From Octopus sinensis (Eukaryota), in the NCBI RefSeq assembly GCF_006345805.1, contig NC_043023.1:12586001-12650000 (forward strand): a stretch of DNA of 64,000 nt. The letters are read 5' to 3'. Positions 1,806 through 64,000 of the stretch are shown here, piece by piece. The stretch's first letter is position 1. Each line of letters opens with the position of its first letter. Below the pieces are notes generated by a model, which saw only the letters and a list, made by a program, of their open reading frames with translations, was not told the origin of the DNA and did no database searches. A program made the position numbers and the translations under genes.

Positions 1806-3448
1806 ATGAATAATTCAACTACGCAAAAATCTCTGATAAAAGAGAAAAGCCATATCACTGTGATATCTGTGGTAACATAACATTAATTATCTCTATGGCT
1901 TTGAACACAAACATATCATAGAAGGAAACAGCATAACTATCACTGTGATATGTATAAACGAAATTATCTCTCATTAATGAATAATTCAACTACGCAAAAA
2001 TCTCTGATAAAAGAGAAAAGCCATATCACTGTGATATCTGTGGTAATCATTCTCTCAAAGTTGTAATCTAAGAAGGCACAGACGTGTTCATACTGGAGAA
2101 AAACCATATCAGTGTGATATCTGTGGTAAATCATTTTCTGAAACAGCACTTTAACTCGTCACAAATTTATTCTATGGGGGAAAAGCCGCATCAGTGTGAT
2201 ATCTGTGGTAAATCATTTTCTGAAAGTGCTTACTTACTAAACAAAACATACTCATACAGGAGAGAAACCATATCAGTGTGATATCTGTGGTAAATCATTT
2301 TCTCAAAGTGCTGAATTACCTAGACACAAACGTATCATACAGGAGAAAAGCCCCATCATTGTGATATCTGTGGTAAATCATTCACTAGAAATAGTGATTT
2401 GACTAGTCATATACGTATTCATACTGGGGAAAAACCATATCAGTGTGATATCTGTGGCAAATCATTTTCTAAGCCTTTTCTTTAAAAGTCACAAACGTAT
2501 TCATACAGGTGAGAAGCTTATCATTGCGATATCTGTGGTGAATCATTCTCTGAAAATAGCAATTTCACCAGACACCTGTATTCATACAGGAGAGAAGCCA
2601 TATTGTTGTAATATCTGTGGTAAATCATTTTCTCAGCCTTCTACTTTAAAAGGGCACAAAACTATTCATACAGGTGAGAAGCCATATCAGTGTGATATCT
2701 GTGGTAAATCATTCTCTTACAGTAGTGAATTACCTAACACAACGTATTCATACAGGAGAGAAACAGAATATCACTGTGATATCTGTGGTGAATCATTTTC
2801 TTGTAATAGCCATTTAACCAGACACAAACATATTCATACAGGAGAAAAGCCATATCAGTGTGATATCTGTGGTAAATCATTTTCCTGTAAATAGCCAACT
2901 TTAAAAGGGCACAAACGTATTCATACAGGAGAGAAACCATATCATTGTGATATCTGTGGTAAATCATTTCTAAGTACATTTAATCAGTCACAAACGTATT
3001 CATACAGGAGGGAGAAACCATATCATTGTGATATCTGTGGTTAAGTCATTGTAAAATCATTTCTAGAAGTAACATTTTAACTGATCACAAACGTATTCAT
3101 ACAGGAGAGAAGCCATACCATTGTGATATCTGTGGTAAATCATTCACTATAAATAGTCATTTGACTAGACATATACGTATTCATACTGGGGGAAAAACCA
3201 TATCAATGTGATATCTGTGGTAATCATTTTCTCAAAATATTAATTTGACTATCCACAAACGTATTCATACAGGAGAGAAGCCATATCATTGTGATATCTG
3301 TGGTAAATCATTTTCTCGCAGTAGTTATTTCCACAAACATAAACGTATTCATATTGGGGAAAAACCATATCATTGTGATATTTGTGGTGAGTCATTCTCT
3401 CAAAAACGCCACTTAAGTTCACATCTGAGTATTCATACACAGGCGTAA
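1806..3448 (+). pseudogene. ZNF1: C2H2 zinc-finger array (~17 fingers), multiply frameshifted as assembled
   Basis: MNNST start at 1806, duplicated at 1977. 84-bp TGTGATATCTGTGG..CATACAGGAGAGAAACCA periodicity runs to the family terminal finger ending SIHTQA* at 3448. ORF track gives only fragments (2445-2894, 3245-3448). Many 1-bp indels, some possibly sequencing error. Confidence 0.8.
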
Positions 3449-3473
3449 TCGTATCAATATCAAAATTTATTAC

Positions 3474-4033
3474 AACCCGGCAGGACAAGTGAGACCATAA
3501 CCCATGGCCTCTACCTGGGATGTAGCCAGTCCACTTATGCATAGCTTTCCTTCTAGGGACACAAAACTCTACTTGTGAAGACCTGTTGCGGCAAGTGAGA
3601 ATCAGATTCCAAATCGAAATCAATCAACATCAATAGAAATTGTAGCTGTGATACCAGTGCTGGTGGCACATAAAAAGCACCAACCGATCGTGGCCGCTGC
3701 CAGCTTCCTCTGGCACCTGTGCCAGTGGCATGTAATAAGCACCATCCGAACGTGGCCGTTGCCATCACCGTCCGAACTGGCTTCCGTGCCGGTGGCACGT
3801 AAAAAGAATCGACTGATCGTGGTCGATGCTAGCCCCCCCCTGGCCCCTGTGCCGGTGGCATGTAAAAAGCACCCACTGCACTCACAGAGTGGTTGGCGTT
3901 TAAGAAGGGCATCCAGCTGTAGAAACACTGCCAGACCAGACTGCAACCTGGTTCAGCCTCCTGGCTTCCCAGACCCCAGTCAACCGTCCAACCCATGCTA
4001 GCAGGGAAAACAGATGTTATACAATGATGATGA
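3474..4033 (+). mobile_element. 5'-truncated retroposon 3' end (RTE/LINE-like 3' UTR) with ~55-bp internal repeats and (GAT)n tail
   Basis: Starts ACCCGGCAGGACAAGTGAG, has GTGCCGGTGGCACGTAAAAAGCAC repeats and TTGGCGTT..GAAGGGCATCCAGC, and ends ATGATGATGA. Clade assignment is recalled, not searched. Confidence 0.75.
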
Positions 4034-4121
4034 GGAGGATTCTCCATTGTTTCCTGTGAAAGACAGCTGTTCTTTTGTGTACTGGACATTTCCAATGTTT
4101 TGTTATTAAACATTTTGTAAA

Positions 4122-4127
4122 AATAAA
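4122..4127 (+). terminator. Candidate poly(A) signal AATAAA downstream of the retroposon tail (type I spacers). Type II candidate at 11698.
   Basis: First AATAAA I could see after the stop codon, followed by a T/GT-rich tract. Confidence 0.35.
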
Positions 4128-60581: not shown

Positions 60582-61210
60582 GTATATATTCTATATTACC
60601 TTGAAGGTAAAATCGTTGACAGAATGGGACAAAGAAGACACTGGAACGAAACGAACCAGTCATAGAAAATTGAAGAACTATAACCATATGAAGGGATATA
60701 ACTTTCCTTAATGAATTAATTAAGGTGCTTAATTAACGATCACTGACTCGTTGTTCGTATCTGAATACGGTAAGTTGACAAATATTTATTTTAAGGCTGT
60801 AATGATGATGATAATACCAATAATGATAAGGTACTACTAGCGAACAGTGGTCCCGGTGCGAGCACTCGCGTTAGCTAGTCGTAAATAGTCGAATCTACAA
60901 TTTTTAAAACTAAGTAAATACATTATTTTTGTAAACAAACTAAGGTTAGGGTTAAAAAGTCGTAGGATCGACTACATACGATTAGCTAGCGCGAGTGCGC
61001 GCACCGGGACCACTGTTCGCTAGTAGTACCGCGCACCTCTCCAAGATAATGACGCTTACTTGTGAGAAAAAGTTAGGAAATGGGAAATATATCCAGAATA
61101 CATAAAGTATGGAGAAAATTAGAAAGATTGATCTATTTTTTAAATATTTTATACTAAAAAATAAAATACGGAGAACGGGCACTCGCGAATATAAACAAAC
61201 AGACAAGGGT

Positions 61211-61482
61211 GTAAGAGTTAGCAGTTCCTTCTCTAAGCTTGGATTCGAAATCGAATCCAAGAATCATCGGTCGTCAAATACCAATGCATGTATAGGCGCG
61301 AAATTAAGAATCCCTTTGTTCTGACAAAACTGATTGATCATCTCCCTTTGACCTCCGACCTGAGCAATGTCAGGACAAAGGGATTCTTAATTTCGCGCCT
61401 ATACATGCATTGGTATTTGACGACCGATGATTCTTGGACTCGATTTCGAATCAAGCTTAGAGAAGGAAGTGCTAACTCTTAC
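61211..61482. mobile_element. Same foldback MITE, unit 9 intron
   Basis: Same site. Right TSD mutated to AAGAGT. Confidence 0.88.
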
Positions 61483-63266
61483 AAGAGTACTATTTAAGAA
61501 GTGAGGTCCCGGTGCGCACATCTGCAGTAGCTAGTCGTGACTAGTCGATCCTTTCTTTGTACTCTTGTTTATTTACTTTGTTTAAAAAAATGAGAGTAAC
61601 TTCGGTATAGGTACCGGAGGTACCAGATACATTTCAAGAAAGTGTCTTTTCTTTATATATATATGGGGGGTTGTGGTTAAGGTTTGTGTTAGAGGGGGGG
61701 GGGAAAGCCATTCATGGTACCTATACCGAAGGATCGCCAAAAAATTACTTATTTTGTGTTTTATTTACTTTGGTAGGTAGTCGCTGTAGGATCGACTAGT
61801 CACGACTAACTCTTTTTAAATAATACCGGAGAAAATTAGAACGATTAATCTATTTTTTTAACTATTTTACACTAAAAAATAAAATACGCAGAACGGGCAC
61901 TCGCGAATATAAACAAACATGTATGTACGTATACGTATGTATTTATGCATATATATGTATTATTATGTATATATATATGTGTGTGTGTAAGGGTGAAGGA
62001 AATTGAATATTAATTAATAACATCAATTTCGTATGGAGTTTGGCGTTTGGTTCAGCAAATTATGTTTTTGATATACTCTACCGATGATTCGAAAATGATT
62101 TGTAAGTAAAATTACACAATCTATTAATGATGAAACAATTGTATAGAGTTAATCCATTTTTTCGTTATTTTTCATTTGTCCTGCCCCCTTACATTCTTGG
62201 CATGTTGAATTAATGCTTGAGAACAATTCGTTAGTGGTGGATTCCCTTTGCCGATCTATTTCTAGCGTTAGAGTGACCATATGTGGTCCCTCTCTTAATA
62301 CTTGTATGTATATATATATATATATATATATACATGTGTGTGTGTGTGTATACAAATATATTTGCAGTGAATCTGGCACGCATGAAGTAGATTGGATCCA
62401 TCCTTGCCAAAATTTTAATTAACCCTTCACCAAATTTTTCCCACGGCAGAATAATAGAGAAATCTCTATACAGAATGTTGTAAAAGTTTCAATGCCTCAA
62501 TGGATTCTGACCCCTGCAAACATAGACATTAAATGGATGACAGTGTTGATGTTGTAAGATTTGCAATGTTGAATTTCTATGTCGTTTAATGATTCTCTTT
62601 ATCTCACTGCTTCTTTTTTTTTCTATTTCAGAATATTACATCCTGTTGATATGAAAGAAATTACTTCATTCAGATGTGCCTCTAATATTCTATCAGCTCC
62701 CATCAACCAAAGGAAGATGATATATTTATACGGAGCATTCATCAATACATCAAACTCATCTTATAAAGGAAATCTGTGAAAAACAACAGCAAAATATTTC
62801 TTCTGGACGATGGAATTAACAGCAACAATTTGAAGTCTTTGCTGTCTGGAATATAGAGGAGATGATTGTTTTACAGGTTAATTAAGCTTGGATGACTTTA
62901 CAAAGGGGTAGACAATTGTCACCTCTTGATTTAGATATTAAGCAAAATCTCAGATGAAAGAAGCATAGCATTAAATTATTCTCTGAAAATAGCAACACAA
63001 TATATTCATAGAAATGAATTTTTTTCCTATTTCAGAATATACCATGTTGATTTAAAAGAAAATTCTTCATTCAGATGTGTGTCTGATATTTTTATTGACT
63101 TTCATCAATTAAAGGAAGGCCATATATTCATAAGGCACATTCATCAATACATCAGCTTCTTTATATAAATAAAATCTTTGACGAACGATGGGGAAATATT
63201 TCTTCTGGATGATGGAATTAAGAGCAACTATCATTGTGATATGTATAATGAAATTATTCTCTCATA

Positions 63267-64000
63267 ATGAATAATTCAACTAAAGCAAAAATCTCTGATA
63301 AAAGAGAAAGCCATATCACTGTGATATCTGTGGTAAGTCATTCTCTCAATTGTAATCTAAGAAGGCACAGACGTGTTCATACTGGAGAAAAACCATATCA
63401 CTGTGATATCTGTGGTAAGTCATTTTCTCAAAATAGCAATTTAATTCATCACAAATTTATTCATACTAGGGAAAAGCCGCATCAGTGTGATATCTGTGGT
63501 AAATCATTTTCTCGAAGTGCTGACTTACCTAAACACAAACGTACTCATACAGGAGAGAAACCAAATCAGTCTGATATCTGTGGTAAATCATTCTCTACCA
63601 GTAGTGACTTAAATAGACACAAAAGTACACATACAGGAGAAAAGCCCCATCATTGTAATATCTGTGGTAAATCATTTCTCTAAGTAGCAATTTAATCAGT
63701 CACAAACGTATTCATACAGGAGAGAAGCCATATCTGTGTAAGTCATTCTCTCACAGTAGTGATTACCTATACATAAACTATTCATACAGGTGAAAAACCA
63801 TATCATTGTATTATCTGTGGTAAATCATTCTCCAGAAGTAATAATTTGTCTGGTCACAGACGTATACATACTGGGGAAAAACCATATCACTGTGATATCT
63901 GTGGAAGTCATTTTCTGAAAATAGCAATTTTTAATTCACATCATTTATTTATTCATACTGGGGAAAAGCCGCATCAGTGTGATATCTGTGGTAAATCATT
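63267..64000 (+). pseudogene. ZNF9: degenerate C2H2 array running off the window end
   Basis: MNNST start. The first finger is scrambled by two compensating deletions, there is a stop at 63681-63683, and more broken fingers follow to 64000. Confidence 0.75.

Follow-up and report, generated by a model that had tools for sequence, protein, structure and literature searches.

A tandem cluster of fingers-only C2H2 zinc finger genes, probably shaped by birth-and-death evolution on a common finger order

Relation to known zinc finger gene clusters

In 2015, Albertin and colleagues reportedly described clustered, lineage-specific expansions of C2H2 zinc finger (ZNF) genes in octopods. The present work concerns nine head-to-tail arrays of C2H2 fingers, here called Z1 to Z9, on the forward strand of a 64-kb stretch of DNA (contig NC_043023.1, positions 12,586,001 to 12,650,000; the window). 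In octopods, clustered C2H2 expansions are established, and their published treatment addresses gene families, trees and expression rather than individual fingers (PMC9795677, PMC12513265). For the KRAB-ZNF and FiNZ-ZNF families, it is established that fingers are gained and lost and that contact residues are under positive selection (PMC3126818, PMC10547256); selection of this kind, together with the targeting of transposons, has been described in other ZNF families (PMC10547256). The cluster in the window is probably the result of birth-and-death evolution of a lineage-specific set of fingers-only poly-ZNF genes, much like that of KRAB-ZNF (KZNF) clusters.

The unit of this evolution begins with some 3 kb of conserved upstream sequence and continues with one uninterrupted coding exon for a 16-residue leader, 12-21 fingers and a last finger that ends in HTQV-stop. 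Whole modules would duplicate by unequal crossing-over between homologous upstream blocks, as shown for the latest event of 14.9 kb, and within the arrays entire 84-bp fingers would be added, lost or locally duplicated in register, with the shared order preserved. Occasionally, short ectopic conversion would transplant a recognition helix, for which finger 1 of Z8 provides one case. Copies would often be killed by frameshift or deletion. In those that keep the open reading frame (ORF), the scaffold would be under purifying selection, and the contact positions -1, +2 and +3 would gain amino acid changes faster than synonymous sites. The proteins of the intact genes (Z3/Z5, Z6, perhaps Z2/Z4 and Z8) are thus predicted to be fingers-only, sequence-specific DNA binders. 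By analogy with the vertebrate ZNF families that track transposons, their binding targets may be under selection to change.

The cluster reveals no new mechanism, and birth-and-death evolution of this kind is ordinary. It offers a finger-level view of one young cluster, which follows the rules known from vertebrate KZNF clusters, namely unequal crossover (here with its junction mapped to 37 bp), gain and loss of fingers on a template, diversification of contact residues and rapid pseudogenization, all in fingers-only proteins. This supports a convergent origin of fast-evolving ZNF repertoires across animals, and two concrete intact genes, Z3/Z5 and Z6, can be named for binding studies.

With the known octopod expansions, the locus shares the tandem clustering of poly-C2H2 genes (here nine arrays in 64 kb), the finger scaffold, and a leader and upstream region that are homologous to those of an O. 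sinensis locus (L001). It differs in that the finger types of this subfamily and its HTQV terminal finger are without a near-identical annotated protein in the databases searched. The vertebrate KRAB-ZNF clusters, such as those on human chromosome 19 and mouse chromosomes 2 and 4 (PMC3126818, PMC5363842, PMC4592553), have in common with the window tandem duplication by unequal crossover, frequent pseudogenes, fingers that are gained, lost or degenerate while their order is conserved, and positive selection at -1, 2, 3 and 6 over a constrained scaffold. A preliminary description of the window had already likened the cluster to KRAB-ZNF arrays. Unlike these, the genes in the window are without a KRAB, SCAN or BTB exon, and the whole protein is encoded in one exon that starts inside a decayed finger.

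The FiNZ-ZNF genes of cyprinid fish (PMC10547256) are similar with respect to the lineage-specific expansion, the short N-terminal part outside the fingers and the positive selection at contact residues. However, FiNZ is an acidic domain of 28 amino acids (aa) with a demonstrated role in transposon repression, whereas the leader in the window has 16 aa and is basic and finger-derived. Because the leader is so short and finger-derived, membership in the FiNZ-ZNF family is not expected. The PRDM9 minisatellite also consists of 84-bp units, with variation focused on contact codons and changes of array length. In contrast to PRDM9, the genes in the window have no PR/SET domain and no homogenization within arrays, and their fingers are orthologous across paralogs.

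Finger order and selection within the arrays

A six-frame scan for C-X2-C-X12-H-X3-4-H gave 113 matches, all on the forward strand and in nine groups, and none on the reverse strand. With a nucleotide profile of the 84-bp unit, 138 finger units were found across the nine arrays, nearly all of them joined by TGEKP(Y/H) linkers. Pfam assigned the arrays to zf-C2H2 (E = 1e-81 to 1e-105, 14-18 stretches) and zf-H2C2_2 (E = 1e-126 to 1e-152). The possibility that the arrays are chance ORFs was considered and rejected. The leader ATGAATAATTCAACT occurs 10 times, first at 1806 and twice in Z1, and the repeat unit is 7-10 kb long (Table 1). Nine paralogs had been counted in the preliminary description. 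Nine arrays are indeed present, but only seven are independent, since Z4 and Z5 are copies of Z2 and Z3. Full-length ORFs are limited to Z3 (and hence Z5) and Z6; of the seven independent copies, five carry frameshifts, stops or a deletion. The proposed DNA-recognition repertoire must therefore be qualified, as about half of it is dead or damaged.

The kinds of damage are diverse. In Z1, almost all unit spacings are 1-3 nt off register, and the 171-bp tandem duplication is a very recent event within the pseudogene. In Z2, the 13 fingers of the ORF are followed by a +1 frameshift, and then by unit 14, a stop and a deviant terminal finger (10899-10982). Unit 14 (10815-10898) lies just 3' of the frameshift and outside the ORF, and its second Cys is replaced by Ser (CDIS). 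Z7 goes out of frame right 3' of its leader and at three later points (about 49416, 49680 and 49763), with the longest open stretch from 49703. In Z8, the sequence that follows the break (59717-60193) corresponds to 12860-13330 in the spacer between Z2 and Z3; a deletion must therefore have taken the remaining array and about 1.9 kb. In Z9, the upstream segment with the splice-like donor and acceptor is deleted. Even the intact ORFs contain broken fingers: finger 13 of Z3 (17645-17728) has lost a zinc ligand by a Cys to Gly exchange, and unit 9 of Z6 (40200-40271) has lost helix positions +4 to +7, including the first His, to an in-frame 12-nt deletion. Such ligand-less fingers may be spacers that divide an array into sub-arrays.

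When 107 units of the seven independent arrays were clustered at 12% nucleotide distance, 28 finger types resulted (type strings in Table 1). For 81 of 98 units, the nearest neighbour belongs to another gene, and for only 12 to the same gene. Fingers of the same type in different genes are on average 93% identical, whereas those of unlike type within one gene reach only 75%, and identity within a type is equal within and between genes (93%). Distances between helices and between scaffolds are correlated (Mantel r = 0.52, with 0 of 2000 permutations as high), and fingers have therefore mostly been inherited as whole units. The common set of finger types that the preliminary description recognized is thus real, and its examples can be located: NLRRH, DKSSLTHH and SADLPKH follow each other in fingers 1-3 of Z2 and 3-5 of Z6 and Z8; the LTDH and LTSH pair is found at 8-9 of Z2, 9-10 of Z3 and 7-8 of Z8; ENSPLTRH at Z2.10 and Z7.15; LKEH at Z2.11 and Z6.16; and QPSTLKGH followed by YSS at 9-10 of Z1 and 17-18 of Z7. 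That fingers group by type and not by gene is exactly what duplication of whole arrays predicts, and alone it is no proof of shuffling. The comparison of finger type and gene of origin, which had been put forward as a check, comes out in favour of type, but does not separate shuffling from whole-array duplication.

The order of the fingers is more informative. Once the terminal finger is left out, the pairwise longest common subsequences sum to 130 of 144 possible, versus 90 +/- 3.5 for shuffled orders, and none of 2000 shuffles attains the observed value. At six clustering thresholds, 85-95% of the shared types are collinear, whereas shuffled orders give 60-70% and never attain the observed value in 1000-2000 trials. 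Finger order among the paralogs is thus largely conserved, with B-D-E-E-(D-E-E)-D-I-G-..K..-S/M-O/U-T-Z as the single collinear template of the arrays. Arrays do differ in finger number, as had been noted, chiefly by gain, loss and local tandem duplication of 84-bp units in register, the duplications being B-D-B-D in Z6, D-D-D-D in Z7, E-E-E-E in Z2 and D-E-E-D-E-E in Z3. Exceptions to the order are that K stands before G in Z6 and after G in Z3 and Z8, that a second I-G block comes late in Z1, and that M is first in Z8 and follows T in Z9. Each of them can be accounted for by a single duplication plus loss, or by a single conversion.

For finger 1 of Z8, a conversion can be traced. The M type is usually found near position 13-15, and the B type is usually the first finger. 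In the Z8 unit, 16 of 17 informative sites on the left match M and 7 of 7 on the right match B (Fisher p = 2e-5). Because the leader lies directly upstream, the finger is a product of short-patch conversion, not of a crossover. About 13 further units show weaker discordance between helix and scaffold. As Z8 opens with this chimera and Z7 with a D type, the first finger is not fixed, contrary to what had been proposed. The terminal finger fares better: a last finger ending in HTQ[VA]-stop is found in Z1, Z2/Z4, Z3/Z5, Z6 and Z7, although the QIRQLSTH finger of Z2/Z4 does not fit the motif that had been quoted for it.

These data bear on two alternatives. If arrays had repeatedly been rebuilt from a pool of modules by exchange between paralogs, with order and number both diversified, one would expect non-collinear placements, chimeric fingers and discordance of helix and scaffold. 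All three exist, in the form of the K/G swap between Z6 and Z3/Z8, the late I-G of Z1 and the displaced M of Z8 and Z9, of the one proven chimera, and of the 13 or so discordant units. However, collinearity is far above that of shuffled orders, the exceptions are each covered by one duplication plus loss or one short conversion, and array content tracks the class of the downstream spacer (see below), as duplication of whole modules predicts. Combinatorial shuffling in this sense is already disfavoured and very improbable, and the headline of the preliminary description, combinatorial shuffling between fixed end fingers, overstates observations that are mostly accurate. The claim of recombination-diversified arrays stands as far as the crossover junction described below, the Z8 deletion and the chimeric finger are concerned, but does not extend to finger order. 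The proposed analogy to PRDM9, in which concerted evolution homogenizes the fingers of an array except at contact codons, could appeal to the near-identical local runs D-D-D-D in Z7, E-E-E-E in Z2 and B-D-B-D in Z6 (90-98% identity). For the arrays overall, it is refuted by the low identity of different types within a gene, by the rarity of nearest neighbours in the same gene, and by the equal identity of same-type fingers within and between genes; Pfam also detected no PR/SET domain. A PRDM9-like minisatellite is therefore extremely improbable.

Selection was measured by Nei-Gojobori counts and by minimal-change counts, with -1, +2, +3 and +6 taken as contact positions. For collinearly matched fingers of Z2, Z3, Z6 and Z8, the proportion of nonsynonymous differences (pN) at contact positions is 0.12-0.23; in the scaffold, the proportion of synonymous differences (pS) is 0.07-0.14 and pN/pS is 0.03-0.23. 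Among strict reciprocal best hits (>= 90% identity), the ratio of nonsynonymously to synonymously changed codons is 44:2 at contact positions and 9:37 in the scaffold (per-pair Fisher p 4e-4 to 0.07). The minimal-change count within type groups, which avoids replication of pairs, gives an omega of 1.72 at contact positions relative to the pooled synonymous rate (one-sided p = 0.005), and of 0.19 in the scaffold. Variability by codon is highest at -1, +3 and +2, followed by +1 and +9, with +6 less variable. Both the concentration of variation in the helix over a constant scaffold, with peaks at -1, +2 and +3, and the nonsynonymous excess at contact residues agree with expectations voiced earlier. 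Diversifying selection at contact positions, over a scaffold under purifying selection, is thus supported by the sequence comparison but not proven.

Module duplication and alternative explanations

Self-alignment shows that the region of about 9430-23900 reappears nearly unchanged 14.9 kb downstream, with 99.95% identity between the two 14.9 kb copies. The region upstream of Z4 matches the region upstream of Z6 at 49 of 49 informative sites up to 24026, and from 24064 every informative site matches the region upstream of Z2, without exception. This single clean switch is the signature of unequal crossing-over, that is, of non-allelic homologous recombination, between homologous upstream blocks. 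Either the duplication is very recent, or the repeat has been mis-joined in the assembly.

The downstream spacers point to duplication of larger units as well. Their first 700 nt fall into two classes: those of Z2 and Z6 are about 93% identical, those of Z1, Z3 and Z7 are about 92-93% identical, and identity between the classes is 76-82%. The remnant 3' of Z8 belongs to the class of the Z2 spacer. The two classes alternate in the order B-A-B-A, and the repeat is therefore a two-gene module. Finger content follows the spacer class, with the P type only in A units, and the F and L types only in B units.

Two further explanations would deprive the cluster of genes or of function. According to the first, Z4 and Z5 are products of misassembly, either a false 14.9 kb duplicate or a haplotig placed in tandem, and the number nine is artefactual as well. 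The near-identity of the copies speaks for this, as does the position of the junction, which lies in a repeat of 97% identity that assemblers may thread wrongly. On the other hand, the copies differ by 4 single-nucleotide polymorphisms (SNPs) and 3 indels, the junction has the one clean switch that a real unequal crossover predicts, and the alternating A/B pattern of the spacers is preserved. None of these points is decisive from sequence alone, and the artefact is in our view unlikely, though by no means negligible. According to the other explanation, the entire locus is a macrosatellite in decay, composed of dead ZNF genes and devoid of function, with variation in the helices as a sign of relaxed constraint. 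This would account for the damage to five of seven independent copies and for the broken fingers within intact ORFs (Z3.13, Z6.9). It accords poorly with ORFs of 434 and 514 codons that have stayed open in DNA of 36% GC, when the pseudogenes of the same cluster show how rapidly the frame decays once constraint is lost, and with a scaffold omega of 0.15-0.19 in the same genes, next to a contact omega above 1 rather than around 1. We consider it very improbable.

Several observations nevertheless weigh against birth-and-death evolution under changing selection as we have described it. The omega above 1 rests on a few dozen changes, and ambiguous matching of the multi-copy D and E types could inflate helix differences. 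The helix and scaffold discordance in the 13 or so units could reflect conversion or chance, and the 14.9 kb duplicate may stem from faulty assembly. Database searches gave no near-identical protein or contig, and exact look-ups of the Z2, Z3, Z6 and Z8 proteins were empty. Finally, synonymous divergence is 7-14% in matched fingers versus 1-4% in the 3 kb upstream block. This excess may mean that the upstream block has been homogenized by conversion, or that fingers are frequently exchanged in short tracts, two processes that are not separable here. A bolder view would hold that a mollusc subfamily, with its start codon in a decayed finger as at the related O. sinensis locus, runs a KZNF-like arms race without a recognizable effector, and obtains new specificities by point changes at contact positions and by short-patch transplantation of helices, as in finger 1 of Z8. 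If this were true, the higher synonymous divergence of the arrays relative to the upstream block would be the footprint of frequent conversion between fingers. We regard it as distinctly unlikely.

Unit anatomy, relatives and spacer repeats

The preliminary description stated that the paralogs share promoter, leader and N-terminus; the leader is found ten times, and the upstream block is highly conserved (Table 1). With 96-99% identity in all paralogs, the block appears homogenized or strongly constrained, judging from the lower identity of the downstream classes (76-82%) and from the synonymous differences in the arrays (7-14%). It contains a TATA-like motif, which is a candidate core promoter, and a 55-nt segment that may be an intron in the 5' untranslated region (5'-UTR). 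The donor and acceptor of this putative intron, like the TATA-like motif, occur in most units, and both are kept in O. sinensis L001; Z1 has lost the acceptor, and Z9 has lost both sites.

Table 1. Coordinates of the arrays and associated features in the window, with finger type strings of the independent arrays
Feature	Position	Strand	Description	Finger types
Z1	1806..3451	+	pseudogene, 18 units; unit spacing 81-95 nt, many stops	ABDEEGFHLTJNOIGWYZ
Z1 171-bp tandem duplication	1701-2046		TRF period 171, 100% identity; copies leader, ATG and first half of finger 1	
Duplication copy 1 (Z2 + Z3)	9161..24063	+	versus copy 2: 4 SNPs, 3 small indels	
Z2	9674..10982	+	ORF 9674-10825, 13 fingers; 15 units overall	BDEEEEDIGHPSMUZ
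Conserved upstream block	13522..16588 (Z3 copy)	+	~3 kb; before every array; 93-99.7% identity among paralogs	
TATA-like motif	16290..16305	+	TTTATATAAATAAAAT; upstream of 8 of 9 units; partly retained in O. sinensis L001	
Candidate 5'-UTR intron	16404..16458	+	55 nt; CAG/GTTAAGT ... TTTTAG/AT	
Decayed finger unit	16551..16636	+	86 nt; exactly one unit 5' of finger 1; includes start codon	
Z3	16589..17893	+	intact ORF, 434 aa; leader and 15 fingers; canonical terminal finger	BDEEDEEDIGKSOTZ
Crossover interval	24027..24063	+	37 bp; from three-way alignment of regions upstream of Z2, Z4 and Z6	
Duplication copy 2 (Z4 + Z5)	24064..38966	+		
Z4	24577..25885	+	copy of Z2, protein identical	
Z5	31495..32799	+	copy of Z3, protein identical	
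Z6	39480..41024	+	intact ORF, 514 aa; 18 units	BDBDEEDDKGPJPTMPTZ
Z7	48952..50770	+	pseudogene, 21 units	DDDDCEEEDEGFHUHRLVUTZ
Z8	58679..59716	+	ORF 345 aa, 12 units, broken off within finger 12	MBBDEEIGQKXa
Z8 finger 1 chimera	58727..58810	+	codons 1-20 M type, codons 21-28 B type	
Z9	63267..64000	+	damaged, at least 9 units, frameshifts and stops; extends past window end	BDEKOTMb
GC-rich SINE-like element	11066-11449, 18107-18315, 41206-41493, 44221-44538, 50854-51396, 52740-52961			

The start of the protein is well delimited. An in-frame stop lies 6 codons 5' of the ATG with no AG in between, so that the ORF is not extendable upstream, and an N-terminal extension was rejected on these grounds. 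When 3.6 kb were searched by nhmmer, the decayed finger unit that includes the start codon aligned in register with the finger profile (E = 0.016), and an equivalent unit is found at the matching site of every array. In its Z2/Z6 form, the leader agrees with a helix plus linker in 8 of 15 residues. The N-terminus is thus a decayed finger, with the leader as the remnant of its helix and linker. Relic finger and ATG are retained in O. sinensis L001 (about 9960-10050), which is a paralogue or orthologue, and the gene looks like an N-terminally eroded finger array.

Pfam searches with the Z3 and Z6 proteins returned zinc finger families only. KRAB, SCAN and BTB domains were not among the matches listed, and the ORF contains only 16 residues outside the fingers, which leaves no room for a PR/SET domain either. 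The two spacers listed contain no ORFs longer than 127 aa, and an upstream effector exon is not evident there. The earlier statement that there is no effector domain is consistent with the Pfam results and with the upstream stop, but it is based on absence of evidence, and a short N-terminal motif may have gone unrecognized.

The best protein matches by identity are from O. sinensis and O. vulgaris (64-67%), and one of these (P0122) has the homologous leader MNKLTEAKNDDIRVKQY. These Octopus relatives surfaced only with a 100-aa leader query, and other protein searches returned mostly generic poly-ZNF proteins. Protein homology searches, including an exhaustive representative search, did not identify an orthologue, and the O. 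bimaculoides protein P0468 was checked and found not to be a close relative. The O. sinensis locus L001 is 73% identical at the nucleotide level, including 440 nt of upstream sequence, and has the same ATG, relic finger and splice-like sites. Its one related array consists of different finger types. The finger scaffold of the cluster also matches that of annotated Octopus proteins. The cluster represents a lineage-specific Krueppel-type poly-ZNF family, probably of cephalopod, octopus-like origin. The array of L001 (10001-13916, O. sinensis CM016873.1) has at least 13 fingers, and the annotated product of 130 aa is not collinear with the genomic translation. The gene model probably skips most of the fingers, a sign that such arrays are under-annotated.

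The spacers contain several repeats. Every spacer has a GC-rich element resembling a short interspersed nuclear element (SINE), with internal repeats of 61-62 bp and spurious ORFs on the minus strand (LDALPNANHSVSVV...). This element explains the GC peaks of 0.42-0.45. It had no match in Pfam (three minus-strand ORFs), Rfam or a tRNA scan, and Rfam and tRNA scans of the whole window gave no matches either. A 147-bp satellite in the Z7-Z8 spacer (54106-55622) comprises 10.3 copies with 98% identity. The same sequence is present as a single copy at homologous spots in other spacers (for example 6603-6800 and 60219-60367), and the satellite is therefore a local expansion. In A-class spacers, a purine-rich low-complexity tract of the (AAG)n/(GAA)n type (11690-12070 and 41574-41855) gives rise to poly-K/E and poly-S pseudo-ORFs.

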